NCBI RefSeq assembly: GCF_964194025.1
Contig: NC_134475.1
Coordinates: 37,076,001 to 37,140,000 of the forward strand
DNA from: Convolutriloba macropyga
Lineage: Eukaryota
Direction: 5' to 3'
DNA: 64,000 nucleotides
Under the pieces are notes generated by a model that did no database searches, was not told the DNA's origin, and worked only from the letters and a program-made list of their open reading frames with translations. Positions within the stretch are counted from its first letter, which is position 1. Each line of letters opens with the position of its first letter. A program made the translations under genes and the position numbers. Positions 13,621-46,877 of this stretch are shown in pieces.

Positions 13621-13624
13621 AAGA

Positions 13625-21900: not shown

Positions 21901-24567
21901 ACTTGTTCATAGCATATCTTATGATCATAGTGGAACGGTTGACATGGTAGACCACAAATGTGCAATCCACAATCCATTTGTGTACCACACGGCACAAAAC
22001 AGAAATTAGTCGAGGCAAAAGGCTCTCCCCCGACAACCACACCCTTCTTAACATCAAGATGCTTACTACAATTCAAAATAAGCTTCTTCCCAAAGCAACC
22101 TTCCTGTCTTAACCTGTTCAAAAACGGAGTCCAAACTTCACAACTTCTTTTCTGACGCTCAAGTGTGGCAGCATTGCCTAAAAATATGACACCGGACTTT
22201 CCTCGACTTTGGGCAACACAGCGTCGATTGAGAACCCCAATGAAGCCCGATGTTGCGTTTGTGTTGCTTCGCACCAGCGATACAATCACGATATCATTTT
22301 CGTCACCCTGGAAGTTGTCTATTGTCTGAACATCGATCCATTTACCTGTCAGTCTCGGGTCAGATCTCATCAAACGTCTGAGTTCTCCAGTTTGTCCTTG
22401 ATACCCTGCTAAAACTGTTAAGCTTTTAGGGTTGTAGCCATTTGCATTGATGAGGTAGGATACCAGCTCTACTACTGCTTTCGCTTCAACTCGATTGCAG
22501 TAGCTTCGACCTCCAGTTTCTGAATAATCATGATCCCAGAAGAAACAGTTAGTTGCCAAACCCCGGACAGAAGGGTTTAAGGAAACACGAGGGTGATCTC
22601 TCAATTTTGGGTATATATCTGTCAAGTACATAGAAATATCGGGTCTCATTCTATTCTGGGTTTCTAGAGTAGAAAACTCGATGTCGTTGTTGATCAATCG
22701 TTCCATCATGCTTATATCGAAATGAAACTTGTGAACCAAATCATAGCATTCTACATTTGGTCTTAATTGCTTATGATCACCTATCATAACCAAATGCTTT
22801 ACGTGGTTCCCAAGTAGAGCTATCAGCTGCGCTTCATTAATTTCTGCGGCTTCTTCTACAATGATGACTTGAGGTTGGACAACATTCAATAAATCAGCGC
22901 GCATTGCAGCTCCGGTAGTTGTCATTGCAATCACTCTCGCTTTCTTCACTGCAACTGCCTCTCTCTGCAGTCTCATTTTGGTGCGTTGCTCTATCTTCAC
23001 ATGCAGCTGCTCAAACAACTCATCCATATCATTTAAAGCCCGTTCTCTTTGTTTCCAAACAAGATATTGAACTAAATGCAACCTGTTTGCTTCCTGTAAT
23101 GTCCAAATATCTTTCACCTTCCTCAGTGACCAAAAATCCGTTCTTTTTGCCAAAATCTCAGTTGCAGACCCAAGGAACTCCATGCATTTAGGACTGCCGT
23201 GACTGCTGCCATAGGGGTCAAATTTTGGACCCACCAAGTCGCTTTCCTGGACAATAGTTTGGGTCGTGAAATCGTTTTTTAAGCCAGCAGCCTCAAATCT
23301 TTCTTCTATCAACTTTTCCGTTTCAAGGGCCAATTCCAAGTCTTGTTCATCAGTATCATTATCAGTAGTAGAATTGCTATACAGAAACCTACTTTTGTCT
23401 CGTTTTGAGCTCAACTGCTTGATTTCCGTCTCTAAATGCTGCAGCTCTCTCTGGGCTGAGAGGGTAAAAGTGTCAGAAGGCAGCCATTGATCCAAAGATT
23501 CTACTACCTTTTCCACCAGGTAGTTAATTGCAGAGTAAAACTTCCTAGTATTTAAGTGATCGAAAATTGCCTCCCCCATCAATTCGATGCAACTGTAAGC
23601 TTTCAAATGGGTTTGCAGGTCGTAGTCACTTATTTTGTCCCGTAACATATTTGCAAGTTGCAATGAATCGAAGCACTTGAGGAGCACATCAACCTCTAGG
23701 GGACTCTCGACAATTTTTCGGAATTTCTTAAAAGCTGCGTTTATTTTCAAGTTCAAATCATCTATTTCGTGGCAAATTCTCAATTCAAACTCACTTGGTT
23801 TACCTAAGACATTCTTGAGCGAATACTGGGCCATTGTGTTATCTTTTGACTGTCCACCCAGACGCAAGAAACAACCCGGAGTTTGCAAAAAATTTGTACG
23901 CAATATCGCTCGAGAGAATTCATCCAGTGCATGATTCTTATAAGTGAGTACTAAAATTGGAGAGGTCACTGCTGGACCCGTTCTAAAGTCGGCTTTCTCA
24001 CTCAATTTAAGATCGAGCAACACGTTCGTTAAATGGACACCAAGGTATGTCTTCCCAGTTCCAGGAGGTCCCTGCACAATTGAAACACGGGTCTTCAACA
24101 TGTGTTTCATAGCCTCAAACTGGCTTCCATCCAATATACAATTTGACGAGTGTTCTGCTTCATGGAAAAAATTGTCAACATTTATTGCCGTGTCTCCATC
24201 TGTATATAGCTTGTTTAAACTAAACGTTGCGCCAGCATGGGCCGAAAATCTGAAGGGAAGCGCCTGAGCTAATATCAACTCATTACGAAATGCAAAATTT
24301 GCCGATGTCAGGTCTTGCATTGATTTCAGTACTGGTTGGTAGGAGGCAAACATTGTGGGAGCTTCTACTATAACTAACGAGCCATTTCTGGACACCAAAG
24401 TTTGCAAATCCTTGGCAAAAGTAGTGTTAGGAACGTCAATATACTCCACGACAACAGTGATAGAGCCATTTGCAAATTCATCGCTTCGTCTTTGTACTGC
24501 TCCCCACACAACATCCTCAGCAAAATTAGTTGCCGACACTGCCACCAGATTCCCTCGCAGAAAGTAC
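18915..24567 (-). CDS. ZNFX1: ZNFX1-like helicase, coding exon 2 (SF1 UPF1-like helicase, NF-X1 zinc fingers, two PARP-like domains)
   Basis: Uninterrupted ORF with GPPGTGKT, VEEAAE, IGDHKQLRP, QNRM, TIDNFQGDEND, CVAQSRGK and a long Cys/His array; acceptor tttttcacgcag|G at 24568/24567 in the phase needed to join exon 1. Confidence 0.93.
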
Positions 24568-26152
24568 CTGCGTGAAAAATGACTCTGGTTAATCGGATGC
24601 GCTATAAAAGCTGACAATGAAGATCGATAATGACCGGTCGTATATAATGTTCCAACATTGCATATGCAGATTAATTTATCAAAACTTGGAATCGTAAAAC
24701 TTCTTTAACTTCTTAAGAATAAGGTGTTCACCCTTAGCTCTTATTAACTGCTGTCTAGTGGCCGCAGGGCATCACAAAGAATACAGCCGCCACTTTTCTT
24801 ATTTTTGTTCCGGTTTTGTTTATAATTTGAGAAAATCTGGTCTTCAGAAGCTAAACTCTATTTCTCGTGCACAAAGATTAAGTATCACACTCATGGTGAC
24901 AAAAAACAAACTGAGCTGGGTAAAAAAATATGGTACCAAAAAGCTACGTACCACATAATTTCTACGCTTAAAGCATGATTAGAGCTTCATAAGCATTATT
25001 TGCGCAAAAGCGTGAAAAAAGTGTGAAATTTAAAAGTTTTAAGAAAAATTTCATTCTCAATTTCTCCGCTTGAACGGAAAAAGTGGCTAAACTGCTTTGA
25101 AAATTTTTTACGCTACGAGATGTCGGATTTTCATGACCAAAAATACAAAAACAACTCAACTTGAAACAAGGATCTAGTTCACAGTATATATACAAAGGTT
25201 ACCTAAAAATAACAGTTTCGAGGACAAAAAAATCTAGCGCAAGACCGCCAAAAATGTTCAAAAAACCCAAAAAGGAGTTAACGATGTTTTAACAGACCCC
25301 CAAAAACCTCACTGCAGCGTATTGAAGTGACTTCTCCTATATATTAAACGCGTGAGCTCTAAAGTGAGACAAAAATTTTTGCATGTTTAAGGGGCCTCTC
25401 GAAGTGCATGTTAAAAGCCGCATTGAGCAGCATGGTTAAGCGAACATATAGAGAGAGGTCAATGAAATAAAAGGAATAAAGTAGATGGGTGAGAACCGAA
25501 CCTGGAACAAAAGACTGTTAACCAGGCGCAGTTACGAAAAGGCTCAGAAGGTTTGAAAGTATGCTCAACCAGAGGGAGGATTTACTGTCCTGGGTACTAC
25601 GTGTTTCTTAAATGCTTCCGAACTAGAATTGAAGTTCTTATTGTAAACGTGTGTTTTCTGCAAAGTTTTAGCTTTACAGATTCTGCGCTTTTCTAGAATA
25701 CTCTTAGCTTTCAACTAAGTTTTTTACGCTTAATTTTGATTTTTGTGTGATCTCAAATGCTCTCAATCTTGAAATACTTTTATTGATACAATAAAAGCGA
25801 TTTTGAGAAACGGGGGTATGTAGTCGTTATAGTGCAGTTGGTAAGATGGAGGACTGCTATTCTGAGGGTCGAAGGTTCGAACTCGTGTTCAGTACCATTG
25901 CTGGTGTAAATGTTTAATCAACAGCATGCCACCAGTTGCTCGAGAGCACTTCTTGCGACGCTGATTCGTTTTATGTTCCTGTGTGTGCTTGGGGGATGAA
26001 AAATGTTAATCCTATATATTAAACGCGTGAGCTCTAAAATTGGACAAAATTTTGCGTGTTTAAGGGCCTTCTCGAAAGGTTTGTTTAAGAGCCGCATTGA
26101 GCAGAATGTTAACGAACATATCGAGAGAAGTTAATGACCGAAAAGCCTCAAA

Positions 26153-26224
26153 GTAGATGGGTGAGAACCGAACCTGGAACAAAACACTGTTAGTCAGGTG
26201 CAGTTACCACGAGGCTAAGAGGGC
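26153..26224 (-). pseudogene. Second tRNA-derived module, opposite strand (representative; in all units except the deleted last one)
   Basis: Minus strand GCCCTCT-TAGCCTCGTGGTAA...CTGA-CTAACAG...CCAGGTTCGGTTC followed by a T-run; the B-box has decayed to GGTTAGG in central units. Confidence 0.6.
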
Positions 26225-27166
26225 TTGAAAATATGCTCGCCAAGAGCGAGGATTTACTCTCTTGCGTACAACGTGTTTTGTAAATGCTCCCGAACTAAAG
26301 TTGAAGCTCTTACCGTAAACGTGTGTTTTCTGCAAACTTTTAGCTTTACAGATTGAGCGCTATTCTAGAGCACTCTTAGCTTTCAACTAAGTTTTTCACG
26401 CTTAAATTTGATTTCTGTGTGATCAAATGCTCTCAATCTGAAATATTTTTGATACAATAAACGCGATTTTGAGAAACGGTGGTATGTAGTTTTTAGAGTG
26501 CAGTTGGTAATATGCACGACTGCTACTCTGAGGGTCGATATTTCGATCCCTCGTTGGGTACCCTCCCTTTTGTGGACATGAAAAATTCTAATCAACCCAT
26601 GCCGCCTGTTTTTCGAGAGCAGATCTTGCAACGCTGAGTCGTATTATGTTCCTGTATGTGTGAGAGATGAGAAATGCTAGTCTTATGTATTAAAAGCGTG
26701 AGCTCTAAAGCCGTGTAAAATTTTTGCAAGTATAAGGGGCCTCTCGAAACGCTTGTTTAGCAGCCGCATTGAGCAGCATGGTTAACGAACATATCGAGAG
26801 AGGTCAATTACCTAAAACGCTCAAAGTAGATGGGCGAGAACCTAACCTGGAATAAAAGACCGTTAGTCAGGTGCAGTTACAACGAGGCTAAGAGGGCTTG
26901 AAAATATGCTCGCCCAGAAGGAGGAGTTACTCACCTGGGTAAAACGCGTTTTTTAAATGCACCCGAGCTAAGGTTGAAATTCTTGTAGTAAACGTGTGTT
27001 TTCTACAAAATTTCAGTTTTACAGATTCTGCGCTATTCTAGAACACTCTTAGCTTTCAACTAAGTTTTTTAAGCTTAATTTTGAATTTTGTGGGATCTCA
27101 AAGGCTCTCAATCTGAAATACAATTATTGATACAATGGACGCGATTTTGAGAAACAGTGATATGTA

Positions 27167-27239
27167 GTTGTTATAGTGCAGTTGGTAATATGTGAGACTG
27201 CTACTCTGAGGGTCGATAGTTCGAACCCTTGTTGGGTAT
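27167..27239 (+). pseudogene. tRNA-derived module (representative; one per array unit)
   Basis: A-box TAGTGCAGTTGG and B-box GTTCGAACC at tRNA spacing, TTTT just downstream; stems mispair, so not a functional tRNA. Confidence 0.8.
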
Positions 27240-30200
27240 CCTCCCTTTTGTGGACATGAAAATTTCTAATCAACCCATGCCGCCTGTTTTTCGAGAGCAG
27301 GTCTTGCAACGCTGAGTCGTTTTATCTTCCTGTATGTGTGAGAGATGAGAAATCCTAGTCCTATATATTAAAAGCGTGAGCTCTAAAGCGGTACAAAACT
27401 TTTGCAAGTATAAGGGGCCTCTCGAAACGCTTGTTTAGGAGCCGCATTGAGCAGCATGGTTAACGAACATATCGAGAGAGGTCAATCACCTAAAAAACTC
27501 AAAGTAGATGGGTGAGTACCTAAACTAGAATAAAAGACCGTTAGTCAGGTGCAGTTACAACGAAGTTAAAAGGGCTTGAAAATATGCTCGCCCAGAAGGA
27601 GGAGTTATTCTCCTGGGTAAAACGTGTTTTTTAAATGCTCCCGAACTAAGGTTGAAATTCTTGTAGTAAACGTGTGTTTTCTACAAAATTTCAGTTTTAC
27701 AGATTCTGCGCTATTCTAGAACACTCTTAGCTTTCAACTAAGTTTTTTAAGCTTAATTTTGAATTTTGTGTGATCTCAAAGGCTCTCAATCTGAAATACA
27801 ATTATTGATACAATGGACGCGATTTTGAGAAACAGTGATATGTAGTTGTTATAGTGCAGTTGGTAATATGTGAGACTGCTACTCTGAGGGTCGATAGTTC
27901 GAACCCTTGTTGGGTATCCTCCCTTTTGTGGACATGAAAATTTCTAATCAACCCATGCCGCCTGTTTTTCGAGAGCAGGTCTTGCAACGCTGAGTCGTTT
28001 TATCTTCCTGTATGTGTGAGAGATGAGAAATGCTAGTCCTATATATTAAAAGCGTGAGCTCTAAAGCGGTACAAAACTTTTGCAAGTATAAGGGGCCTCT
28101 CGAAACGCTTGTTTAGGAGCCGCATTGAGCAGCATGGTTAACGAACATATCGAGAGAGGTCAATCACCTAAAAAACTCAAAGTAGATGGGTGAGTACCTA
28201 AACTAGAATAAAAGACCGTTAGTCAGGTGCAGTTACAACGAAGTTAAAAGGGCTTGAAAATATGCTCGCCCAGAAGGAGGAGTTATTCTCCTGGGTAAAA
28301 CGTGTTTTTTAAATGCTCCCGAACTAAGGTTGAAATTCTTATAGTAAACGTGTGTTTCCTGCGAAACTTTAGTTTCACAGATTCTGCGCTATTCTAGAAC
28401 ACTCTTAGCTTTCAACTAAGTTTTTTAAGCTTAATTTTGATTTTTGTGTGATCTCAAATTCTCTCAATCTGAAATACTTTTTATTGGTACAATGAACGCG
28501 ATTTTGAGAAACGGTGATATGTAGTTGTTATAGTGCAGTTGGTAATATGCACGACTGCTACTCTGAGGGTCGATAGTTCGAACCCTCGTTGGGTACCCTC
28601 CCTTTTGTGGACATGAAAATTTCTAATCAACCCATGCCGCCTGTTTTTCGAGAGCAGGTCTTGCAACGCTGAGTCGTTTTATCTTCCTGTATGTGTGAGA
28701 GATGAGAAATGCTAGTCCTATATATTAAAAGCGTGAGCTCTAAAGCGGTACAAAACTTTTGCAAGTATAAGGGGCCTCTCGAAACGCTTGTTTAGGAGCC
28801 GCATTGAGCAGCATGGTTAACGAACATATCGAGAGAGGTCAATCACCTAAAAAACTCAAAGTAGATGGGTGAGTACCTAAACTAGAATAAAAGACCGTTA
28901 GTCAGGTGCAGTTACAACGAAGTTAAAAGGGCTTGAAAATATGCTCGCCCAGAAGGAGGAGTTATTCTCCTGGGTAAAACGTGTTTTTTAAATGCTCCCG
29001 AACTAAGGTTGAAATTCTTATAGTAAACGTGTGTTTCCTGCGAAACTTTAGTTTCACAGATTCTGCGCTATTCTAGAACACTCTTAGCTTTCAACTAAGT
29101 TTTTTAAGCTTAATTTTGATTTTTGTGTGATCTCAAATTCTCTCAATCTGAAATACTTTTTATTGGTACAATGAACGCGATTTTGAGAAACGGTGATATG
29201 TAGTTGTTATAGTGCAGTTGGTAATATGCACGACTGCTACTCTGAGGGTCGATAGTTCGAACCCTCGTTGGGTACCCTCCCTTTTGTGGACATGAAAATT
29301 TCTAATCAACCCATGCCGCCTCTTTTTCGAGAGCAGATCTTGTAACGCTGAGTCGTATTATGTTACTGTATGTGTGAGAGATGAGAAACGCTAATCCTAT
29401 ATAATAAACGCGTGAGCTCTAAGGCGGGACAAAAATTTTGCAAGTACAAGGGGCCTCTCGAAACGCTTGTTTAGGAGCCGCATTGAGCAGCATGGCTAAC
29501 GAACATATCGAGAGAGGTCAATCACCTAAAACGCTCAAAGTAGATGGGGGGTGAGAACCTAAACTAGAATAAAAGACCGTTAGTCAGGTGCAGTTACAAC
29601 GAAGTTAAGAGGGCTTGAAAATATGCTCGCCCAGAAGGAGGAGTTATTCTCCTGGGTAAAACGTGTTTTTTAACTGCTCCCGAACTAAGGTTGAAATTCT
29701 TATAGTAAACGTGTGTTTCCTGCGAAACTTTAGTTTCACAGATTCCGCGCTATTCTAGAACACTCTTAGCTTTCAACTAAGTCTTTTAAGCTTAATTTTG
29801 AATTTTGTGTGATCTCAAAGGCTCTCTATCTGAAATACAATTATTGATACAATGGACGCGATTTTGAGAAACAGTGATATGTAGTTGTTATAGTGCAGTT
29901 GGTAATATGTGAGACTGCTACTCTGAGGGTCGATAGTTCGAACCCTTGTTGGGTATCCACCCTTTTGTGGACATGAAAACTTCTAATCAACCCTTGCCGC
30001 CTGTTTTTCGAGAGCAGTTCCTGCAACGCTGAGTCGTTTTATGTTCCTGTATTTGTGAGAGAGGAGAAATGCTAATCCTATATAATAAACGCGTGAGCTC
30101 TAAAGCGGTACAAAACTTTTGCAGGTGCAAGGGGCCTCTCGAAACGCTTGTTTAGGAGCCGCATTGAGCAGCATGGTTAACGAACAAATCGAGAGAGGTC

Positions 30201-33200
30201 AATCACCTAAAAAGCTCAAAGTAGATGGGTGAGAACCTAACCTGGAATAAAAGGCCATTAGTCAGGTGCAGTTACAACGAGGCTAAGAGGGCTTGAAAAT
30301 ATACTCGCACAGAAGGAGGAGTTACTCTCCTGGGTAAAACGTGTTTTTTTAATGCTCCCGAACAGAAGTTGAAATTCTTATAGTAAACGTGTGTTTTCTA
30401 CAAAATTTTAGTTTTACAGATTCTGCGCTATTCTAGAACACTCTTAGCTTTCAACTAAGTTATTTATGCTTAATTTTGATTTTTGTGTGATCTCAAATGA
30501 TCTCAATCTGAAATACTTTAATTGATACAATGAACGCGATTTTGAGAAACGGTGATATGTAGTTGTTATAGTGCAGTTGGTAATATGTACGACTGCAACT
30601 CTGAGGGTCGAGAGTTCAAACCCGCGTTGGGTACTCTGGCTTTTGTGGACATGAAAATTTCTAATCAACCCATGCCGCCTGTTTTTCGAGAGCAGTTCTT
30701 GCGACGCTGAGTCGTATTATGTTCCTGTATGTGTGAGAGATGAGAAATGCTAGTCTTATATATTAAAAGCGTGAGCTCTAAAGCCGTGTAAAATTTTTGC
30801 AAGTATAAGGGGCCTCTCGAAACGCTTGTTTAGGAGCCACATTGAGCAGCATGATTAACGAACATATCGAGAGAGGTCAATCACCTAAAAAGCTCAAAGT
30901 AGATGGGTGAGAACCTAACCTGGAATAAAAGACCATTAGTCAGGTGCAGTTACAACGAGGCTAAGAGGGCTTGAAAATATACTCGCACAGAAGGAGGAGT
31001 TACTCTCCTGGGTAAAACGTGTTTTTTAAATGCTCCCGAACTGAGGTTGAAATTCTTATAGTAAACGTGTGTTTTCTGCAAAATTTTAGTTTTACAGATT
31101 CTGCGCTATTCTAGAACACTCTTAGCTTTCAACTAAGTTTTTCAAGCTTAATTTTGATTTTTGTGTGATCTCAAATTCTCTCAATCTGAAATACTTTTAT
31201 TGATACAATGAACGCGATTTTGAGAAACGGTAATATGTAGTTGTTATAGTGCAGTTGGTAATATGTGAGACTGCTACTCTGGGGGTCAATAGTTCGAACC
31301 CTTGTTGGGTACCCGCCCTTTTGTGGACATGAAAATTTCTAATCAACCCATGCCGCCTGTTTTTAGAGAGAAGTTCTTGCAATGCTGAGTCGATTTATGT
31401 TCCTGTGTGTTTGAGGGATGAGAGATACTAATACTATGTATTAAACGCGTGAGCTCTAAGATGGGATAAAGCTTTTGCATTTTTAAGTGGACTCTCCGAG
31501 CGCATGTTTAAGAGTCGCATTGAGCAGCATGTTTAAGAGGTCATATCGAAAGAGGTCAATGACCTAAAAGACTCAAAGTAGATGGGTGAGAACCTAACCT
31601 GGAATAAAAGACCATTAGTCAGGTGCAGTTACAACGAGGCTAAGAGGGCTTGAAAATATACTCGCACAGAAGGAGGAGTTACTCTCCTGGGTAAAACGTG
31701 TTTTTTAAATGCTCCCGAACTGAGGTTGAAATTCTTATAGTAAACGTGTGTTTTCTGCACAAATTTAGTTTTACAGATTCTGCGCTATACTAGAACACTC
31801 TTAGCTTTCAACTAAGTTTTTTAAGCTTAATTTTGATTTTTGTGTGATCTCAAATTCTCTCAATCTGAAAAACTTTTTTTGATACAATGAACGCGATTTT
31901 GAGAAACGGTAATATGTAGTTGTTATAGTGCAGTTGGTAATATGTGAGACTGCTACTCTGGGGGTCAATAGTTCGAACCCTTGTTGGGTACCCGCCCTTT
32001 TGTGGACATGAAAATTTCTAATCAACCCATGCCGCCTGTTTTTAGAGAGCAGTTCTTGCAATGCTGAGTCGTTTTACCTTCCTGTATGTGTGAGAGATGA
32101 GAAATGCTAGTCCTATATATTAAAAACGTGAGCTCTAAAGCGGTACAAAACTTTTGCAAGTATAAGGGGCCTCTCGAAACGCTTCTTTAGGAGCCGCATT
32201 GAGCAGCATGGTTAACGAACATATCGAGAGAGGTCAATCACCTAAAAAGCTCAAAGTGGATGGGTGACAACCTAACCTAGAATAAAAGACCGTTAGTCAG
32301 GTGCAGTTACAACGAAGTTAAGAGGGCTTGAAAATATGCTTGCCCAGAAGGAGGAGTTACTCCCCTGGGTAAAACCTGTTTTTTAAATGCTCCCAAACTA
32401 AGGTTGAAATACTTATATTAAACGTGTGTTTCCTGCAAAATTTTAGTTTTACAGATTCTGCGCTATTCTAGAACACTCTTAGCTTTCAACTAAGTTTTTT
32501 AAGTTTAATTTTGATTTTTGTGTGATCTCAAATTCTCTCAAAATCTGAAATACTTGTATTGATACAACGAACGCGATTTCGAGAAACGGTGATATGTAGT
32601 TGTTATAGTGCAGTTGGTAATATGTGAGACTGCTACTCTGGGGGTCGATAGTTCGAACCCTTGTTGGGTTCCCGCCCTTTTGTGGACATGAAAATTTCTA
32701 ATCAACCAATGCGCCTGTTTTTCGAGAGCAGTTCTTGCAACGCTGAGTCGTTTTATGTTCCTTTATGTGTGAGACGAGAAATGCTAATCCTATATATTAA
32801 ACGCGTGAGCTCTAAAGCGGTACAAACATTTTGCAAGTGTAAGGGGCCTCTCTAAACGCTTGTTTAGGAGCCGCATTGAGCAGCATGGTTAACGAACATA
32901 TCGAGAGAGGTCAATCACCTCAAAAGCTCAAAGTGGATGGGTGAGAACCTAACCTGGAATAAAAGAACATTAGTCAGGTGCAGTTACAACGAGGCTAAGA
33001 GGGCTTGAAAATATACTCGCACAGAAGGAGGAGTTACTCTCCTGGGTAAAACGTGTTTTTTAAATGCTCCCGAACTGAGGTTGAAATTCTTAGAGTAAAC
33101 GTTGTTTTCTGCAAAATTTTAGTTTTACAGATTCTGCGCTATTCTAGAACACTCTTAGCTTTCAACTAAGTTTTTTAAGCTTAATTTTGATTTTTGTGTG

Positions 33201-36200
33201 ATCTCAAATTCTCTCAATCTGATATACTTTTATTGATGCAATGAACGCGATTTCGAGAAACGGTGATATGTAGTTGTTATAGTGCAGTTGGTAATATGTG
33301 AGACTGCTACTCTGGGGGTCGATAGTTCGGACCCTTGTTGGGTACCCGCCCTTTTGTGGACATGAAAATTTCTTATCAACCCTTGCCGCCTGTTTTTCGA
33401 GAGCACTTCTTGCAATGCTGAGTCGTTTTATGTTCCTGTATGTGTGAGAGACGAGAAAAGCTAATCCTATATATTAAACGCGTGAGCTCTAAAGCGGTAC
33501 AAACATTTTGCAAGTGTAAGGGGCCTCTCGAAACGCTTGTTTAGGAGCCGCATTGAGCAGCATGGTTAACGAACAAATCGAGAGAGGTCAATCACCTAAA
33601 AAGCTCAAAGTGGATTGGTGAGAATCTAACCGGGAATAAAAGACCATTAGTCAGGTGCAGTTACAACGAGGCTAAGGGGGCTTGAAAATATACTCGCACA
33701 GAAGGAGGAGTTACTCTCCTGGGTAAAACGTGTTTTTTAAATGCTCCCGAACTGAGGTTGAAATTCTTAGAGTAAACGTGTGTTTTCTGCAAAATTTTAG
33801 TTTTACAGATTCTGCGCTATTCTAGAACACTCTTAGCTTTCAACTAAGTATTTTAAGCTTAATTTTGATTTTTGTGTGATCTCAAATTCTCTCAATCTGA
33901 TATACTTTTATTGATACAATGAACGCGATTTCGAGAAACGGTGATATGTAGTTGTTATAGTGCAGTTGGTAATATGTGAGACTGCTACTCTGGGGGTCGA
34001 TAGTTCGAACCCTTGTTGGGTACCCGCCCTTTTGTGGACATGGAAATTTCTAATCAACCCATGCCGCCTGTTTTTCGAGAGCAGTTCTTGCAACGCTGAG
34101 TCGTTTTATGTTCCTGTATGTGTGAGCGACGAGAAATGCTAATCCTATATATTAAACGCGTGAGCTCTAAAGCGGTACAAACATTTTGCAAGTGTAAGGG
34201 GCCTCTCGAAACGCTTGTTTAGGAGCCGCATTGAGCAGCATGGTTAACGAACATATCGAGAGAGGTCAATCACCTAAAAAGCTCAAAATGGATGGGTGAG
34301 AACCTAACCTGGAATAAAAGACCATTAGTCAGGTGCAGTTACAACGAGGCTAAGAGGGCTTGAAAATACACTCGCACAGAAGGAGGAGTTACTCTCCTGG
34401 GTAAAACGTGTTTTTTAAATGCTCCCGAACTGGGGTTGAAATTCTTATAGTAAACGTGTGTTTTCTGCAAAATTTTAGTTTTACAGATTCTGCGCTATTC
34501 TAGAACACTCTTAGCTTTCAACTAAGTTTTTCAAGCTTAATTTTGATTTTTGTGTGATCTCAAATTCTCTCAATCTGATATACTTTTATTGATACAATGA
34601 ACGCGATTTCGAGAAAAGGTGATATGTAGTTGTTATAGTGCAGTTGATAATATGTGAGACTGCTACTCTGGGGGTCGATAGTTCGAACCCTTGTTGGGTA
34701 CCCGCCCTTTTGTGGACATGAAAATTTCTAATCAACCCATGCCGCCTGTTTTTCGAGAGCAGTTCTTGCAACGCTGAGTCGTTTTATGTTCCGTTATGTG
34801 TGAGAGACGAGAAATGCTAATCCTATATATTAAACGCGTGAGCTCTAAAGCGGTACAAACATTTTGCAAGTGTAAGGGGCCTCTCGAAACGCTTGTTTAG
34901 GAGCCGCATCGAGCAGCATGGTTAACGAGCAGATCGAGAGAGGTCAACCACCTAAAAAGCTCAAAGTGGATGGGTGAGAACCTAACCTGGAATAAAAGAC
35001 CATTAGTCAGGTGCAGTTACAACGAGGCTAAGAGGGCTTGAAAATATACTCGCACAGAAGGAGGAGTTACTCTCCTGGGTAAAACGTGTTTTTTAAATGC
35101 TCCCGAACTGAGGTTGAAATTCTTAGAGTAAACGTTGTTTTCTGCAAAATTTTAGTTTTACAGATTCTGCGCTATTCTAGAACACTCTTAGCTTTCAACT
35201 AAGTTTTTTAAGCTTAATTTTGATTTTTGTGTGATCTCAAATTCTCTCAATCTGATATACTTTTTTTGATACAATGAACGCGATTTCGAGAAACGGTGAT
35301 ATGTAGTTGTTATAGTGCAGTTGGTAATATGTGAGACTGCTACTCTGGGGGTCGATAGTTCGAACCCTTGTTGGGTACCCGCCCTTTTGTGGACATGAAA
35401 ATTTCTTATCAACCCTTGCCGCCTGTTTTTCGAGAGCACTTCTTGCAACGCTGAGTCGTTTTATGTTCCTGTATGTGTGAGAGACGAGAAATACTAATCC
35501 TATATATTAAACGCGTGAGCTCTAAAGCGGTACAAACATTTTGCAAGTGTAAGGGGCCTCTCGAAACGCTTGTTTAGGAGCCGCATTGAGCAGCATGGTT
35601 AACGAACATATCGAGAGAGGTCAATCACCTGAAAAGCTCAAAGTGGATGGGTGAGAACCTAACCTGGAATAAAAGACCATTAGTCAGGTGCAGTTACAAC
35701 GAGGCTAAGAGGGCTTGAAAATATACTCGCACAGAAGGACGAGTTACTCTCCTGGGTAAAACGCAATTTTTAAATGCTCCCGAACTGAGGTTGAAATTCT
35801 CATAGTAAACGTGTGTTTTCTGCAAAATTTTAGTTTTACAGATTGTGCGCTATTCTAGAACACTCTTAGTTTTCAACTAAGTTTTTTAAGCTTAATTTTG
35901 ATTTTTGTGTGATCTCAAATTCTCTCAATCTGATATCCTTTTATTGATACAATGAACGGGATTTCGAGAAACGGTGATATGTAGTTGTTATAGTGCAGTT
36001 GGTAATATGTGAGACTGCTACTCTGGGGGTCGATGGTTCGAACCCTTGTTCGGTACCCGCCCTTTTGTGGACATGAAAATTTCTAATCAACCCTTGCCGC
36101 CTGTTTTTCGAGAGCAATTCTTGCAACGCTGAGTCGTTTTATGTTCCTGTATGTGTGACAGACGAGAAATGCTATTCCTATATATTAAACGCGTGAGCTC

Positions 36201-39200
36201 TAAAGCGGTACAAACACTTTGCAAGTGTAATGGGCCTCTCGAAACGCTTGTTTAGGAGCCGCATTGAGCAGCATGGTTAACGAACATATCGAGAGAGGTC
36301 AATCACCTAAAAAGCTCAAAGTGGATGGGTGAGAACTTAACCTGGAATAAAAGACCATTAGTCAGGTGCAGTTACAACGAGGCTAAGAGGGCTTGAAAAT
36401 ATACCTGCACAGAAGGAGGAGTTACTCTCCTGGGTAAAACGTGTTTTTTAAATGCTCCCGAACTGAGGTTGAAATTCTTATAGTAAACGTGTGTTTTCTC
36501 CAAAATTTTAGTTTTACAGATTTTGCGCTATTCTAGAACACTCTTAGTTTTCAACTAAGTTTTTTAAGCTTAATTTTGATTTTTGTGTGATCTCAAATTC
36601 TCTCAATCTGATATACTTTTATTGATACAATGAACGCGATTTCGAGAAACGGTGATATGTAGTTGTTATAGTGCAGTCGGTAATATGTGAGACTGCTACT
36701 CTGGGGGTCGATAGTTTAAACCCTTGTTGGGTACCCGCCCTTTTGTGGACATGAAAAATTCTAATCAACCCATGCCGCCTGTTTTTCGAGAGCAGTTCTT
36801 GCAACGCTGAGTCCTTTTATGTTCCTGAATGTGTGAGAGACGAGAAATGCGAATCCTATATATTAAACGCGTGAGCTCTAAAGCGGTACGAACATTTTGC
36901 AAGTGTAAAGGGCCTCTCGAAACGCTTAATTAGGAGCCGCATTGAGCAGCATGGTTAACGAACATATCGAGAGAGGTCAATCACCTAAAAAGCTCAAAGT
37001 GGATGGGTGAGAACCTAACCTGTAATAAAAGACCATTAGTCAGGTGCAGTTACAACAAGGCTAAGAGGGCTTGAAAATATACTCGCACAGAAGGAGGAGT
37101 TACTCTCCTGGGTAGAACTTGTTTTTTAAATGCTCCCGAACTGAGGTTGAAATTCCTATAGTAAACGTGTGTTTTCTGCAAAAATTTAGTTTTACAGATT
37201 CGGCGCTATTCTAGAACACTCTTAGTTTTCAACTAAGTTTTTTAAGCTTAATTTTGATTTTTGTGTGATCTCAAATTCTCTCAATCTGATATCCTTTTAT
37301 TGATACAATGAACGGGATTTCGAGAAACGGTGATATGTAGTTGTTATAGTGCAGTTGGTAATATGTGAGACTGCTACTCTGGGGGTCGATGGTTCGAACC
37401 CTTGTTCGGTACCCGCCCTTTTGTGGACATGAAAATTTCTAATCAACCCTTGCCGCCTGTTTTTCGAGAGCAATTCTTGCAACGCTGAGTCGTTTTATGT
37501 TCCTGTATGTGTGACAGACGAGAAATGCTATTCCTATATATTAAACGCGTGAGCTCTAAAGCGGTACAAACACTTTGCAAGTGTAATGGGCCTCTCGAAA
37601 CGCTTGTTTAGGAGCCGCATTGAGCAGCATGGTTAACGAACATATCGAGAGAGGTCAATCACCTAAAAAGCTCAAAGTGGATGGGTGAGAACTTAACCTG
37701 GAATAAAAGACCATTAGTCAGGTGCAGTTACAACGAGGCTAAGAGGTCTTGAAAATATACTCGCACAGAAGGAGGAGTTACTCTCCTGGGTAAAACGTGT
37801 TTTTTAAATGCTCCCGAACTGAGGTTGAAATTCTTATAGTAAACGTGTGTTTTCTCCAAAATTTTAGTTTTACAGATTTTGCGCTATTCTAGAACACTCT
37901 TAGTTTTCAACTAAGTTTTTTAAGCTTAATTTTGATTTTTGTGTGATCTCAAATTCTCTCAATCTGATATACTTTTATTGATACAATGAACGCGATTTCG
38001 AGAAACGGTGATATGTAGTTGTTATAGTGCAGTCGGTAATATGTGAGACTGCTACTCTGGGGGTCGATAGTTTAAACCCTTGTTGGGTACCCGCCCTTTT
38101 GTGGACATGAAAAATTCTAATCAACCCATGCCGCCTGTTTTTCGAGAGCAGTTCTTGCAACGCTGAGTCCTTTTATGTTCCTGTATGTGTGAGAGACGAG
38201 AAATGCGAATCCTATATATTAAATGCGTGAGCTCTAAAGCGGTACGAACATTTTGCAAGTGTAAAGGGCCTCTCGAAACGCTTAATTAGGAGCCGCATTG
38301 AGCAGCATGGTTAACGAACATATCGAGAGAGGTCAATCACCTAAAAAGCTCAAAGTGGATGGGTGAGAACCTAACCTGTAATAAAAGACCATTAGTCAGG
38401 TGCAGTTACAACAAGGCTAAGAGGGCTTGAAAACATACTCGCACAGAAGGAGGAGTTACTCTCCTGGGTAGAACTTGTTTTTTAAATGCTCCCGAACTGA
38501 GGTTGAAATTCCTATAGTAAACGTGTGTTTTCTGCAAAAATTTAGTTTTACAGATTCGGCGCTATTCTAGAACACTCTTAGTTTTCAACTAAGTTTTTTA
38601 AGCTTAATTTTGATTTTTGTGTGATCTCAAATTCTCTCAATCTGATATCCTTTTATTGATACAATGAACGGGATTTCGAGAAACGGTGATATGTAGTTGT
38701 TATAGTGCAGTTGGTAATATGTGAGACTGCTACTCTGGGGGTCGATGGTTCGAACCCTTGTTCGGTACCCGCCCTTTTGTGGACATGAAAATTTCTAATC
38801 AACCCTTGCCGCCTGTTTTTCGAGAGCAATTCTTGCAACGCTGAGTCGTTTTATGTTCCTGTATGTGTGACAGACGAGAAATGCTATTCCTATATATTAA
38901 ACGCGTGAGCTCTAAAGCGGTACAAACACTTTGCAAGTGTAATGGGCCTCTCGAAACGCTTGTTTAGGAGCCGCATTGAGCAGCATGGTTAACGAACATA
39001 TCGAGAGAGGTCAATCACCTAAAAAGCTCAAAGTGGATGGGTGAGAACTTAACCTGGAATAAAAGACCATTAGTCAGGTGCAGTTACAACGAGGCTAAGA
39101 GGGCTTGAAAATATACTCGCACAGAAGGAGGAGTTACCCTCCTGGGTAAAACGTGTTTTTTAAATGCTCCCGAACTGAGGTTGAAATTCTTATAGTAAAC

Positions 39201-42002
39201 GTGTGTTTTCTCCAAAATTTTAGTTTTACAGATTTTGCGCTATTCTAGAACACTCTTAGTTTTCAACTAAGTTTTTTAAGCTTAATTTTGATTTTTGTGT
39301 GATCTCAAATTCTCTCAATCTGATATACTTTTATTGATACAATGAACGCGATTTCGAGAAACGGTGATATGTAGTTGTTATAGTGCAGTCGGTAATATGT
39401 GAGACTGCTACTCTGGGGGTCGATAGTTTAAACCCTTGTTGGGTACCCGCCCTTTTGTGGACATGAAAAATTCTAATCAACCCATGCCGCCTGTTTTTCG
39501 AGAGCAGTTCTTGCAACGCTGAGTCCTTTTATGTTCCTGTATGTGTGAGAGACGAGAAATGCGAATCCTATATATTAAACGCGTGAGCTCTAAAGCGGTA
39601 CGAACATTTTGCAAGTGTAAAGGGCCTCTCGAAACGCTTAATTAGGAGCCGCATTGAGCAGCATGGTTAACGAACATATCGAGAGAGGTCAATCACCTAA
39701 AAAGCTCAAAGTGGATGGGTGAGAACCTAACCTGTAATAAAAGACCATTAGTCAGGTGCAGTTACAACAAGGCTAAGAGGGCTTGAAAATATACTCGCAC
39801 AGAAGGAGGAGTTACTCTCCTGGGTAGAACTTGTTTTTTAAATGCTCCCGAACTGAGGTTGAAATTCCTATAGTAAACGTGTGTTTTCTGCAAAAATTTA
39901 GTTTTACAGATTCGGCGCTATTCTAGAACACTTTTAGCTTTCCACTATGTTTTTTACGCATAATTTTGGTTTTTATGATCTCAAATGCTCTCAATCTGAA
40001 ATACTTTTATTGATACAATAAACGCAATTTTGAGAAACGGTGATATGAAGTTGTTATAGTGCAGTTGGTAATATGTACGACTGCAACTCTGAGGGTCGAG
40101 AGTTCAAACCCGTGTTGGGTACCCTGGCTTTTGTGAACATGAAAACTTCTAATCAACCCACGCCGCCTGTTTTTCGAGAGCAGTTCTACCGACGCTGAGT
40201 CGATTTATGTTCCTGTGTGTTTGAGGGATGAGAAATGCCAATCCTATGTATGAAACGCGTGAGCTCTAAGATGGGACAAAACTTTTGCATTTTTAAGTGA
40301 ACTCTCCGAGCGCATTTTTAAGAGCCGCATTGAGCAGCATGGTTAAGAGATCATACCGAAAGAGGTCAATGACCTAAAATACTCAATGTAGATGGGTGAG
40401 ATCCGAACTTGGGACGAAAGACTGTTAGTCAGGTGCAGTTACCAAGAAGTTAAAAGGGCTTGAACATATGCTCGCTTGGAAGGAGAGGTTACTCTCCTGG
40501 GTACAACGTGTTTTTTAAATGCTCCCGAACTAAAGTTGAAGTTCTTATTGTAATTGTGTGTTTTCTGCAAAAATTTAGTTTTACAGATTCTGCACTATTC
40601 TAGAACACTCTTAGCTTTCAACTACAATTTTTACGCTTAATTTCGATTTTTGTGTGATCTCAAATGCTCTCAATCTGAATTATTTTTATTGATACAATAA
40701 ACAAGATTTTGAGAAGCGGGTACATGTAGTTGTTACAGTGCAGTTGGTAATATGTACGACTGCTACTCTGAGGGTCGAGAGTTTAAACCCGTGTTGGGTA
40801 CCCTACCTTTTGTGGACATGAAAATCTCTAATCAACCCATGCCGCCTGTTTTTCGAGAGCAGTTTTTGCGAAGCTGAGTCGTTTTATGTTCCTGTGTGTT
40901 TGATGGATGAGAAATGCTAATCCTATATATTATACGCGTGAGCTCTAAGATGGGACAAAATTTTTCCATTTTTAAGGGGCCTCCAGGAGCTTATGTTTAA
41001 AAGCCGCATTGAGCAGCATGGTTAAGTGAACATATCGATAGATGTCAATGACCTAAAAGACTTAATGTAGATGGGTGAGATCCGAAAATGGGACGAAAGA
41101 CTGTTAGTCAGGTGCAGTTACCATGAGGCCTAGAGGGCTTGAGCATATGCTCGCTTAGAAGGAGAAGTTACTCTCCTGGGTACGTGTTCTTTAAATGCTC
41201 CCGAACTAAATTTGGAGTTCTTATAGTAATTGTGTGTTTTCTGCAAAATTATAGTTTAACAGATTCTGCGCTACTCTAGAACACTCTTAGCTTTCAACTA
41301 AGTTTTTTACGTATAATTTTGTTTTTTAGTGATCTCAAATGCTCTCAATCTGAAATACTTTTATTGATACAATAAACGCGATTTTGAGAAACGGGGGTAT
41401 GTAGTTCTTTTAGTGCAGTTGGTAATATGTCGGACTGCTACTCGGAGGGTTGATAGTTCGAATCAGTGCTTGTAAGCCTCCCTTTTGTGGACATGAAAAT
41501 TTCTAATCAACCCATGCCGCCTGTTTTTCGAGAGCAGTTCTTGCGACGCTGAGTCATTTTATGTTCCTGTGTGTTTGAGGGATGAGAAATGCTAATCCTA
41601 TATATTAAACGCTTGAGCTCTCAGATGGAACAAAATTTTTGCTTTTTTAAGGGCCTCTCAAAGCGCATGTTTAAGAGCCCCATTAGGAGAACTTTCAACT
41701 AAAGTTTACACGCTTTACTTTTTGGTTTTGTGTGATCTCAAATGCTCTCAATCTGAAATATGTTGAATGATACGATAAAAGTGATTGTAAGAAACGTTGG
41801 TATGTAGTCGTTATAGTGCAGTTTGTAAGATGGAGGACTGCCACTCTGAAGGTCGAAGGTTCGAATCCGTGTCGGATAACCTCATTTTTGTAGACATATA
41901 AATTTCTAATCAACACCATGCCCCCTGTTGTTCGAGAGCACTTCTTGCGACGCTGAGTCGTTTTATGTTCCTGTGTTTGTGTTTGGGGGATGAAAATACT
42001 AA

Positions 42003-43250
42003 TATAATATATTAAAATTAACTCGCGCTCGAACGCAATGGTTAACTACGCTCCTGACTTCACATGTTTTAACGATCCTTAAACTTGCAGCCTATACAGC
42101 CATGCTTAAGTGCCTGATCTGCAAATTCTTTGTTGCTCTTTAGCCGTACAGCTTAGCAAAAATAGCGAGACAAAAAATCAATTGACCAAAATCTTGCCTA
42201 TGTAGCCACCACCGATAGACAACAGCAACAGGCGTCGGTAGCTCAAAAGAATAGATCTGTAGATGTGAAGAGAGGGGAATGGGTTCGAGCCCGAGTAGGG
42301 GAGGAAAAGTTTTCATAATGTACGGGGATGAAAAATGTACGCGGAGTTGGTTGTCTTTTTTCACTTCTTCATTTGTTTGCTTTTATTTTTTACTTATATC
42401 TTCGTTTCCTTCTTTCTCTTAGCCTTCATCTTTTATATCTTTCTCCATTTCTTTCTCTTCCTTTTATCTAATATATTAAATGTAAGTCGAAATTGAGCGC
42501 ATTGATTAACAGCGCTCCTATCGTCATATGTTTTAACAATCCTTAAACATGCAACCTACACGACCATTCTTAAGCGCCTGATCTGCAAATGTTTTTTACT
42601 CATTAAGCATACAGCTTGGCAAAAACAATCGAGACCAAAAGGCCATTGACCAAAGTTTTGAGTATGAAGCCACTTCTTTAGACAACAGCAACAGGCGTCG
42701 GTAGTACAAGGGATTAGAAATGTGGCTGTGAAGAGAGGGTCAAGGATTCGATCCCTAGTAGGTGCGAAAAAGGATGCATAGTGTACTGGGATAAAAAATG
42801 GGGAAATGAGTTTCCCTTACCCTTCATTTTTTGCTTTTATTTGTTACTTGTTTATAGTAATTATCAGTCGCAATTGAGCACAATGGTCAACAGCACTCCT
42901 ATCGCAATGTGTTTTAGGGGTCCTTAATGATGCATCCTAGCGTAATAAATGCGTTTTGAGACGCGCTTTACCATCATTTTTAAGCTCCTATTACGCACAT
43001 TTTTTTCGCACTCATTAGGCATGCGGTATAGCAAAGAAGCAAGTCACAAACGCCATTGTCCAGAAATTTGCTGTAGAAAGACAAGTGCAATATGTATAGA
43101 TAGCTTAGGTGGTGAGACCTATGGTTGTTGAGCGAGGGGCATGGGTTCCAGATCGAGTTGGTGCGAAACAGAAACCTTTACGAAACCTTCTTTTGAAACT
43201 TCCAATCTTGTAAATGATTTTCTTATGATTTTACGTGCCCGCTAGTAACA
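42003..43250 (+). repeat. Three diverged ~400-465-bp sister units, each with a tRNA-like module
   Basis: Units at ~42003, ~42467 and ~42850; tRNA-like segments at ~42232-42303 (GGTTCGAGCCC), ~42695-42767 and ~43092-43165; a CTAG|T occurs at ~43242-43246. Confidence 0.75.
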
Positions 43251-44077
43251 TTGAAGTGTCTCATTTTCAGGACCCTAGTTTTCAAAAACATAACGCCCTG
43301 TTCAGAAACCGAAGCGTACTGACTATTTTGTGTCCAAGAAAAGCAATAGAAGGCCAAGAAAAGGTCGGTGAAAGGAGTAGAGCTCGGATCCTAATCCTAT
43401 TGAAAATTTATTTGTAATTTTGAGGAAGCAGTTACCAAAACATAGATTTCGAGGCATCAATTACGAAAACAGACAATTACGAAAACAAGCAGCAAACACG
43501 AAAGCAGACATAAAATTTGAAATCAAAATGCAATTTTTGATGTTTGAAATGCTTTTTAAAAAATCTTTCGTTTTACGTAGCTTTTTGGTACCATAGTGTA
43601 CCGAAGGCTGCCCTATTGAACCTTGTTTGGTTGCCACCAAAATATAACAAACTATAACGCTAAATATAACAGCCTTATGACGTACTAGCCTAAGTAGAGA
43701 AAAAAATGTGAGCCTAGTCTTCCAAAACTTCTATTTCTCCTATGGCGAAACACATCTCGCAACATGAAGCGTAAGAAGCCGACTTTTAAACCAACTTTTG
43801 TGTAAAATTTCAAACGGGTTCTCTAAAATAATAAGAAAAAAGATTCTTCATGCCCTTGACTCTATTTCAAACTAGGTTTCAGACAACTCTCTATGGATGT
43901 CCAAAACTTCAGATTTAAGCTACATGTCGACATTTTTTAAATATTTCAAGAATTTCTCCGTTTCTTTGCAAATATCGGAAAAATCTAATATCAATTTTAA
44001 TATACACAAAACTAATATCAATTTTAAAACAAAAACACTGCAAACCGCAAATTATTTACGTTGAACGTATTATAAAA

Positions 44078-46877
44078 AATAATAGGATATAAAAAACATT
44101 CAGAAAGGTTTACTGAAATTGTCAAATTTTATAGAATTGATACTGTAAGTCCAAGGTGACTATTTTCGTGCCTAGCATCAAATGCTACTAGCCTCAAAAT
44201 AAAATTGTTTTTCAAGATTCAGGAAAGCGTTTATTCTAGGGGAAACCGTAAATGTAATCTTCAGGCAACAAGGCAACAAAGACGGCCAAAAATTGAAATA
44301 AGTTCGTTTTTTTCCTTGAAAACCTTGAAACCGTTAACAAACAGTTACTGTTCTAAAACAAAAATTTTTTTGAAAAAGAAACAAAAACGAGAAGAAAACA
44401 AAACAAATTAAAAAAATTTTACTTACTGTTTTCAATGATTTCACGTCTCCTTTCATCAATTGCAACCAATTCCACAAAAAAGATTTTTGCTGTTTTCACA
44501 AGATAAAGTTTTCAAAAAGAGAGTCCAATTAAAGCAGAAGCGACAGTAAACTCAACACAAGTTCTAAAAAGATCCTAGCTCGTCGACAACTTTTGTAGTT
44601 TTGGAGCAATTTGGACACCAAGACAGTTAAGCAGGGATTGATGCTGCATCTCTCAAAAATTTATGTTTTATCCAATTTCAATTGAGTACGATCATTATCA
44701 CGTTCTTCGAAAAAAAAAACAACAAAGAGGTCTTGTTTTGGTAAAAATACTATATTAAATGCAATCATTGACAATGGCTCGATCCAAACTACCTTTGAAA
44801 CTATGTTTATTTTTTTCTTTGGATTCACTTGAGTTTAGTTTGCATCAACTATCTCGAAACAAAAATTTTCAGTTTCGTCTTAATATTGATTAGATTGCTT
44901 TGAGTGTGATTGATGCTTAAGTATTTTTAAACTCTTGGAGTCTTTGCGTTGAGATTATTAGAGTGAAAAGGCAAACATTTGAATCGGCTCGAGAAAAAAA
45001 TGTTTCTTTCTTTGTAAATTTTGGGCAAGACATTTGCTCTAGAAAAAAACATTGCAGAGAAATTGTTAAATAGAAACAACGCACAAAATTACAAAAACGA
45101 ACCAAAAAGACAATTTTAACCTACGTACTCCTATAATGCATTTAGGGTACTGCTAAGGTTAATTCAGGTAATGAAAACCCAGATTATGGCAGAATTCTCG
45201 AGAGAATCATTCTATTTAGAGTTAAGGAAAAAGATATTTGACCTCAGTTAAGTTGAAATAACGAGCAGTTGACAGCGTTTTTAGTGAACAGAAAATTAAT
45301 TCCTTTTACCCTCGAATAGCTGTTACGGTATTTTTACGCAATTCAAGCTAGCTAACGTAGGTAAAGGCTACGCTGAAATGTCATTCAAGCGGGGAAAGTC
45401 TTTGCTAGAGTAAGAGGCTAGAGCATTTTATGGGAAGTCAAATTCGCATTCGCTTTACCGTTATCCCAAATTAGTAAAGGTGAACCTATTAGATAAAAAA
45501 TAGGCTATGAAAAATATGCAGATAGGGCTACTGAAATTCTCAAATTGTATAGAATTGATACTATAGGTTCAAGGTGATTATTTTCGTGCCTAGCATCAAA
45601 TGCTACTAGCCTCATAATAAAATTGTTTTTCAAGATTCAGGAAAGCGATTATTCTAGGGGAAACCGTAAATGTAATCTTCAGGCAACAAGGCAACAAAGC
45701 GGGCCAAAATTTGAAATAAGTTCATTTTCTTCCTTGAAAACCTTGAAACAGTTAACAGACAGTTAATGTTCTAAAACAAAATTTTTTTTGAAAAAGAAAC
45801 GAAAACGAGAAAACAAAACAAAAAAATTTTACTTACTGTGTTCAATGATTTCACGTCTCCTTTCATCACACGCAACCAATTCCACAAAAAAGAATTTTGC
45901 TATTTTCACAAGATAAAATTTTCAAAGTGTCCAGTTAAAGCAGAAGCCGCAGTAACCTCATTCAACCCCAGTTTCAAAGAGACCCTAGCTCGTCGAAAAC
46001 TTTTGCAGTTCTTGAGCAATTCGGACACCAAGACAGTTAAGCAGGGATTGAAGCTGCATCTCTCACAAACTTTTTTTTATCCAATTTCAATTGATTACGA
46101 TCATTATCACATATCACGTTCTTCGAAAGAAAACAACAAAGAGGTCTTGTTTTGGTAAAAACACTATATTAAATGCAGTCATTGATCAATGACTCGATGC
46201 AAACTACCTTTGAAACTATGTTGATTTTCTTTCTTTGGATTCACTTTAGTTTAGTTTGCATCAACTATCTCGAAACAAAAATTTTCATCAGTTTCGTCTT
46301 AATATTCACCAGAATACTTTGAGTGTGATGTTGATTAAGTATTTTTAAACTCTTGGAGTCTTTGCGTTGCGATTATTAGAGTAAAAATGTAAACATCAGA
46401 ATCCGCTCGAAAAAACAAGTTTCCGTTCTTTGTAAGTTTTGAACAAGAGAGTTGCTCTATAAAAACATTGAAGAGAAATGGTTCAATAGAAACAACGCAC
46501 AAAATTACAAAAACGAACCAAAAAGACGATTTCACCTTACGTACTCCTATAATGCATTTTAGGTACAGCTAAGGTTCATTCAGGTAATGAAAATCCAAAT
46601 TAAGGCAGAACTCTCCAGAATCTCATTTTTACTAGAGTTAAGGAAAAATTTTACTTGACCTCAGTTGTGAAATAACGAGCAGTTGACAGCGTTTTTTAGT
46701 GATCAGAAAATTAAGAAAGAAAATTACCATCGAATAACTGCTAAGGTATTTTTACGCAGTTCAAGGAAGTTAACATGGGTAAAGGTTAAGCTGAGATGTT
46801 TTTCAAGCGGGGAAAGTCTTCGCTAGTGTAAGAGGTTAGAGCATTTTATGGGAAGTTAAATTCACTTTACCGTTAGG
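44078..46877. repeat. Diverged tandem duplication, ~1.42-kb period, intronic
   Basis: gcctagcatcaaatgctactagcc at 44170 and 45588; colinear throughout. Confidence 0.92.

Follow-up and report, generated by a model that had tools for sequence, protein, structure and literature searches.

What is a 17-kb block of tandem repeats doing in the intron of a helicase gene, and from which element did it arise? This question is raised by a 64,000-nt stretch of the genome of Convolutriloba macropyga (contig NC_134475.1, positions 37,076,001 to 37,140,000), which is called the window hereafter. A preliminary description had regarded the block as a head-to-tail Helitron concatemer, seeded within a host gene by a non-autonomous 678-bp Helitron. 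According to our analysis, the repeat unit is probably a non-coding, non-autonomous element with Helitron-type ends, and the array is a Helitron-derived satellite residing in an intron.

BLAST of one unit against the window revealed 24 full units of ~678 bp and one internally deleted unit on the plus strand, all arranged head-to-tail, while no copy was found elsewhere in the 64 kb. The block thus consists of 25 copies of a 678-bp unit, which does not contain any open reading frame (ORF) longer than 86 amino acids (aa). It was not reported by Tandem Repeats Finder (TRF), whose longest period is 500. The following features define the array:

25335..42002, plus strand: tandem array, 24 full units of 670-681 bp and a deleted last unit, zero spacer
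25335..25350, plus strand: 5' end of the first unit, TCCTATATATTAAACG, Helitron left-end-like; true array start, the preceding 80 nt being unlike the unit 3' end
41596..42002, plus strand: last unit, without unit positions about 92-373; it terminates ...ACTAA, followed by T and an AT-rich flank

The units are joined free of any spacer, CTAA or CTAG being followed directly by TCCTATATATTAAA (a slash marks joints and borders in the following). The 4-mers preceding each TC were CTAA (11), CTAG (6), CTAT (3), CGAA (3), CCAA (1) and TTAA (1). A 3' terminus of the CTRR type closes the array and is found in 17 of its 24 internal joints, either as CTAA or as CTAG; the remainder are one-base variants. 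Right and left ends of successive units hence meet exactly, as they do at the junction of a Helitron circle. The preliminary description had placed the array start TCCTATATATTAAA at 25335, CTAG/TC joints with unit ends at 26680, 28036, 28715, 30753 and 32110, a cCTAG variant end at 27358 and the variant 5' end TCCTATATAATAAA at 29395 and 30076; all of these were found at these positions.

A tandem repeat does not have a defined phase of its own, but at this locus four independent observations fix it. The BLAST alignment to the array begins on the T of TC at 25335, and the 80 nt upstream of it did not show any similarity to the unit 3' end, the score lying below the shuffle mean. Moreover, Logan contigs of four public runs (X1 to X4) were aligned to positions 24400-28035. 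Contigs of X2, X3 and X4 break exactly at 25335. In X1, loose ends are present upstream of 25335 in six contigs and upstream of 26009 in three. The sequences that these contigs carry ahead of the unit are long and AT-rich and differ from one another, their consensus having an A in front of TC. Since the X1 contigs carry unrelated flanks at this point, other loci of the unit family also start at the same TC. With regard to an A/T insertion site, neither a target duplication nor a tail was found at the array; a T follows its 3' end at 42002 and opens a very AT-rich stretch, C precedes the array, and A precedes TC in the consensus flank of the other loci.

The ends of the unit resemble those of a Helitron of known biochemistry. 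For Helraiser, a bat Helitron with activity in experiments, the left end TCCTATATAATAAAAG and the circle joint CTAG/TCCTATATAATAAAAG have been given in supplements (PMC4778049, PMC5876387). The left end is printed there as TCCTATATAATAAAAGAGAAAC... (supplement, PMC4778049), and the oligonucleotide for the circle junction reads ...CTAG/TCCTATATAATAAAAGAGAA (follow-up study, PMC5876387, supplement). A text search of paper main texts for the 5'-end string gave nothing relevant; the string is present in the supplements. The animal Helitron 5' end TCCTATATAATAAA of the preliminary description is therefore real and matches the Helraiser left end. Two kinds of sites illustrate the similarity:

27355..27374, plus strand: example joint CTAG/TCCTATATATTAAAAG, 19/20 identical to the Helraiser circle junction; repeated at 28033 and 28712
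29395..29408, plus strand, also at 30076: variant 5' end TCCTATATAATAAA, 14/14 against the Helraiser left end

Compared with the first 20 nt of the Helraiser circle joint, the unit joints matched at 14-19 of 20 positions, and those of units 4-6 at 19. Elsewhere in the window, both strands included, the best value was 15/20, reached only once. The match to TCCTATATAATAAA is complete in units 7 and 8 and amounts to 13/14 in the consensus, identity to the Helraiser left end covering the first 14-16 nt. The left end of the unit is intact and of the Helitron type (TCCTATATA, then T or A, then TAAA...), the right end is CTAA or CTAG, and the first 20 columns of the alignment belong to the best conserved ones in four old edge units (0.96 versus 0.86 overall). 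Terminal inverted repeats are absent: the reverse complement of the first 40 nt gave only 6-mers within the unit. There are no inverted repeats at the array edges either, and the asymmetric terminal inverted repeat of Helentrons (Helitron2), which links the 5' end with subterminal 3' sequence, was not found in the unit.

Several observations weigh against a Helitron origin. Canonical Helitrons have a short palindrome 10-20 nt upstream of CTRR. Such a subterminal hairpin is absent from the unit, as the last 60 nt of six units, the oldest included, fold no better than dinucleotide shuffles (z from +0.6 to +1.3 in five units and -0.9 in one); for the final 50 nt of the consensus, a folding energy of -0.3 kcal/mol was obtained. 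The string taken for a weak decayed hairpin in the preliminary description (ttcct-gtgtgtttg-aggga) does occur in some edge units, but it does not form a hairpin by folding energy. A Rep-helicase (RepHel) gene is not present in the window, since the adjoining 1900-aa ORF belongs to AAA_11/AAA_12 and not to Helitron_like_N/PIF1. The similarity to Helraiser ends past about 16 nt, as it usually does between Helitron families. Seven of the 24 internal joints are not of the CTRR type (CTAT, CGAA, CCAA, TTAA). The base before the first TC is C instead of A, both in the window and in a second haplotype, a caveat that had been raised correctly at the outset; for Helraiser, a preference for AT-rich DNA has been described which is strongest beside its 3' end, an AT target not being absolute (PMC4778049). 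At the other end of the array, the first 15 nt past it match the unit start at 12 positions, and the first 40 nt align weakly to the first 31 nt of the unit (14 of 500 shuffles reached the score). The true 3' end may thus not lie exactly at CTAA. This stretch may be the stub of a 26th unit; alternatively, it is part of the neighbouring repeat, whose copies all open with a similar AT-rich motif. A solo copy with both ends was not seen among the contigs and 71 kb of other loci. No unit was present in these 71 kb, which comprise three loci with paralogous helicases (L002-L004, from the same or a related European Nucleotide Archive (ENA) assembly), and the flank repeat was likewise absent from them. 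Finally, the family comprises ~1,000-2,700 unit equivalents in the whole genome, a figure that indicates no more than the order of magnitude, summed contig depth not being a copy number; it was derived from the summed depth of four units versus unique depth, the word depth of unique sequence beside the array being about 27-60 in X2-X4. By this figure, the array described here makes up about 1-2% of the family.

Because a hairpin and a Rep-helicase gene are missing in the window and the first TC follows C, the unit would best be termed Helitron-derived (or Helitron-ended), short of a proven member of a Helitron family. Of the original proposal, a non-autonomous 678-bp Helitron that seeded a 17-kb intronic satellite, the Helitron-type ends, the high-copy family and the intron have been borne out, but not the hairpin and the expected 5' flank base. 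The family is common to species beyond the source and nearly identical in part, since runs X7 and X8, labelled as two other organisms, contained 19% and 5% of the 31-mers of two core units. Metagenome scans with the unit 5' end and with a conserved internal 24-mer gave 0 matches each, and a peptide from the longest ORF of the unit, used as a query for other genomic copies, did not yield any candidate.

A different hairpin lies inside the unit, in a stretch at positions about 329-360 (e.g. window 27009-27042). It has a stem of 9 bp (CTGC-AAAAT-TTTA-GTTTT-ACAG) at about 329-352, with CTAG 13 nt downstream. Two apparently compensatory variants exist (units 1 and 5-7), and the stretch is among the best conserved of the old edge units. 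It is conceivable that hairpin and CTAG together represent a former right end past which read-through occurred, but the base that follows is A, and the hairpin is energetically weak. A long internal hairpin at unit positions 293-342 was also considered as an old right end and rejected, as it is strong in units 3-4 only (z about -6); the 9-bp hairpin is more widely spread.

How might a Helitron-ended element have become a satellite? In the mechanism that we propose, a short non-autonomous Helitron would have been mobilised in trans. Helitron transposase would have generated the initial dimer or multimer, in which the units were perfectly joined head to tail. This could have happened in two ways. 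On the one hand, run-on synthesis would result if termination failed on a circular or tandem template, which is plausible because the hairpin, the terminator of Helraiser, is missing from the unit. On the other hand, a second insertion may have occurred into the A/T site that is created by the CTAA end and the following T. Afterwards, unequal exchange enlarged and homogenised the array in the manner of an ordinary satellite, leaving old, diverged edges and a young core. Rolling-circle chemistry may therefore explain the precise first joint and not the present 17 kb. In Helraiser, the left end is essential while the hairpin is a dispensable terminator; when the hairpin is lost, the 3' end is bypassed, and both circle formation and transposition from circles proceed without it. 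One may go further and regard the unit as a terminator-less Helitron, in which loss of the hairpin makes the transposase overrun CTRR so that multimers with perfect joints integrate as ready-made arrays. This extension is tentative, and we consider it possible but rather doubtful.

The growth of the array can be read from the unit-by-unit identity matrix. Identities are lowest at the edges, with 80-82% between unit 1 and all others, 84-88% for unit 2 and 83-88% for units 23-24, whereas the core units are 91-100% identical. Within the core, a higher-order repeat was detected:

35498..39565, plus strand: two-unit (1356 bp) higher-order repeat, units 16-21; alternates 99-100% identical, joints alternating between CTAT/TC and CGAA/TC

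Using a protein 98% identical to that of the neighbouring ORF, a 250-kb ENA contig (L001) was reached which represents a second haplotype or a close relative. This contig is colinear with the window and possesses the array at the same site, with the same C/TC start. Its identity to the window is 98.9% in the exon, 96.7% in the intron flank, 95.9% in unit 1 and 97.0% in unit 2, the edge units being orthologues at 96-97%. By contrast, its interior units do not have one-to-one partners in the window (best values 88-96%), and their order differs. The array predates the split from this 3-4% diverged haplotype; at its edges the array evolves in the manner of neutral single-copy DNA, and unequal exchange drives the turnover of its interior. 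Most of the present 17 kb originated from such exchange, as shown by the pattern of unit identities, the higher-order repeat of two units and the reshuffled order in the second haplotype. The locus has the properties of satellite DNA: a long array, high copy number, a homogenised core, diverged edges, a higher-order repeat and a polymorphic unit order.

These data bear directly on the possibility that all 25 units are a single rolling-circle concatemer which integrated in one event. The precise joints and the integral number of units from TC to CTAA are what such a concatemer would look like, and the missing hairpin would favour run-on synthesis. However, one burst predicts even divergence, while identities of 80-88% were found at the edges and of 91-100% in the core, with alternate units 16-21 reaching 99-100%. 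The second haplotype retains the edge units but differs in the order of the interior. Unequal exchange would be expected to leave both of these patterns. A single integration of the whole array is therefore unlikely. The array does not represent a single frozen concatemer.

A further explanation concerns the flanks of the array, which are themselves repetitive:

24888..25334, unstranded: array 5' flank, a repeat at about 100-140x unique depth, unrelated to the unit 3' end
42003..43180, plus strand: array 3' flank, three diverged copies (76-80%) of another 385-464 bp repeat, openings TATA(A)TATATTAAA-like

Many copies of the 5' flank depart from the window at 25108 and share a different upstream sequence. 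The openings of the 385-464 bp repeat resemble the start of the 678-bp unit, and each of its copies has a tRNA-like pair of A box and B box, e.g. GGTAGCTCAA ... GGGTTCGAGCCC at about 42237-42295. Using nhmmer and relaxed BLAST, no homology of the unit to the adjoining 385-bp repeats or to the 5' flank was detected, and a bacterial promoter/terminator scan of the flank was uninformative. The array and the 385-bp repeats are bracketed by a perfect 22-nt inverted repeat (24929-24950 / 43574-43595), which can be extended weakly to about 190 bp (24814-25008 versus 43705-43516). It may derive from a single element of which two fragments lie in opposite orientation, or it may mark the termini of a larger one.

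On this basis, the array could be the internal tandem cargo of a larger composite element whose ends lie in the flanks, such as a carrier of the oyster Helentron type, a foldback element or an element with terminal inverted repeats. Carriers of the Helitron or Helentron type with tandem repeats are well documented in oysters and Drosophila, the sequence in front of the array (24888-25334) is repeated about 100-fold, and the 22-nt inverted repeat brackets the region. Against this, contigs are interrupted at 25335, and the sequence before TC differs at other loci, which means that flank and unit are not a fixed pair. The depth of the flank is also about 10-20x below that of the unit, and the unit 5' end lacks an asymmetric terminal inverted repeat. 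We regard a composite carrier as decidedly unlikely.

It is also conceivable that the array is an ordinary satellite with a Helitron-like junction by chance, the first duplication having occurred locally between short direct repeats of TATATATTAAA. This motif is found at the unit start and recurs just past the array, where 11 nt of the unit start are present once more in the 3' flank. The features of the array are those of a classic satellite, and by our own estimate CTRR/TC is expected somewhere in 678 bp about half the time. On the other hand, the motif sits at an array boundary that was defined independently, and a 19/20 match to a real Helitron joint contrasts with a background maximum of 15/20. 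Other loci begin at the same base with different flanks, and about a thousand or more unit equivalents exist elsewhere, so that the family was not born here. A chance resemblance is thus very improbable.

That the unit is a tandemised tRNA-derived short interspersed element (SINE) is extremely improbable: an A-box-like TAGTGCAGTTGG and a B-box-like GGTTCGAAC do lie 44 nt apart at unit positions about 487-561 (e.g. 25818-25895 and 41800-41880), and ARAGORN at an 80% threshold calls a tRNA-like fold in 13 of 26 sequences (25 units and the consensus), but ARAGORN with default settings and Rfam (gathering and permissive thresholds; E up to 10 on a 111-nt slice) did not find a tRNA, and the element boundary is at position 1 with the tRNA-like part internal, without tail or target duplication. 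The near-matches in Rfam (mir-722, E 0.61) were dismissed as chance. The tRNA-like segment may be a captured fragment of a tRNA or SINE.

Having a Helitron-derived satellite as the preferred explanation, the array can be compared with known systems. Helibat1/Helraiser and HelibatN of vespertilionid bats, which belong to the canonical Helitron1 type, share with the unit 5'-TC, CTAG/CTRR-3' and the absence of inverted repeats, as well as the identical first nucleotides of the left end (TCCTATATAATAAA followed by A or G). The precise head-to-tail joint CTAG/TCCTATATA corresponds to that of the circles, and the 3' flank begins with T and is AT-rich. What separates the two is the 19-bp palindrome 11 nt before the 3' end of Helraiser, which has no equivalent in the unit, and the C that precedes the first unit. 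Head-to-tail tandem arrays of Helitrons have been reported in bat genomes (PMC4778049, PMC5876387) and also in plants. In Drosophila, the Helitron-1_DPe clusters on the large Y of D. pseudoobscura and the DINE-TR1/pvB370 satellites of the D. virilis group are likewise satellite-like blocks of head-to-tail Helitron copies. However, these elements are autonomous or contain internal tandem repeats and are located in heterochromatin or on the Y, while in the array studied here a whole short element is repeated in a euchromatic gene intron. The Heli1Xen1 and Heli2Xen arrays of Xenopus laevis are similar in that Heli1Xen1 starts with TC, ends with CTAG and possesses a left end rich in TA, TATATAAA (PMC12001565). 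Monomers of the Helitron-derived arrays in Xenopus measure 121-1,996 nt (PMC12001565). These arrays comprise 2-7 copies with a clear right-end hairpin, as opposed to 25 copies, no hairpin and signs of a long turnover of the satellite type. The satellites of the Pacific oyster that are associated with Helentrons or Helitrons (Cg170 and others) are also tandem repeats spread genome-wide with rolling-circle elements. There, the repeats are internal cargo between Helentron ends, whereas the unit itself bears Helitron-type ends and lacks an asymmetric inverted repeat of the Helentron type.

Three observations confirmed that the array lies within an intron: a contig is spliced, the splice sites are GT-AG, and the exons are joined in frame. 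The gene is composed of the following parts:

24568..46973, minus strand: host intron, 22,406 bp, GT..AG; the array is antisense to the gene and occupies 74% of it
18915..24567, minus strand: downstream exon, long ORF (1900 aa), ZNFX1-like superfamily 1 (SF1) helicase (AAA_11/AAA_12), not a Helitron RepHel
46974..48640, minus strand: upstream exon in the frame of a 577-aa ORF (46907-48640), joined in frame to the helicase exon

A 7.7-kb contig of X1 matches the long ORF up to 24571 and continues with a 30-mer unique to 46978-47007. An 8-nt overlap, GTACCTGC, on both sides allows a join that excises 24568-46973. On the minus strand, the borders of the intron read CAG/GTACGT ... tttttcacgcAG/G, and the codon across the join consists of bases 46975, 46974 and 24567, so that the 577-aa frame continues into the 1900-aa frame. 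Since its depth is high on the exon (55) and close to zero in the adjoining intron (0 to 0.75), X1 was taken to be RNA-like, the type of this run being a guess.

The 1900-aa ORF encodes an Upf1-like helicase, and its relatives are ZNFX1-like proteins. The host gene encodes at least about 2,400 aa and has two very long exons (18915-24567 and 46974-48640, minus strand). Many paralogues of the helicase with 33-50% identity, some with a PARP domain, are present on other contigs of the same ENA assembly. Upstream of the first exon seen, three long ORFs (250, 440 and 188 aa; window 49694-52521, minus strand) gave only a weak PHD finger as a family match; they could be additional exons or belong to another gene. 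A ~3.4-kb tandem duplication (10218-13618 and 13621-17443, about 95% identity) follows the helicase gene on its downstream side and is also present in the second haplotype. Arrays with 30-65 bp per unit, based on the palindrome GCGGTGAA-TTATTTTTTTT-CACCGC, were found at 5566-5929; TRF scored them at up to 249, and they look like a foldback repeat or a miniature inverted-repeat transposable element (MITE).

The route from Helitron to satellite has already been documented, and the present array is a new example of it and not a new category. It is a clean case, since a whole short element constitutes the repeat unit, the joints are of the circle type, 14-16 nt of the left end are identical to those of a Helitron of known biochemistry, and the hairpin is missing. 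It also demonstrates that a 17-kb antisense repeat block is tolerated in an intron of an expressed ZNFX1-like helicase gene. This combination of features makes the idea testable that loss of the terminator drives the formation of concatemers. Should the unit indeed descend from a terminator-less Helitron, each joint would remain a cleavable circle-type junction and the arrays would act as donors with multiple origins. The family would then link the terminator function of Helraiser, as known from cell culture, to the emergence of a satellite and its spread through a genome in the wild.

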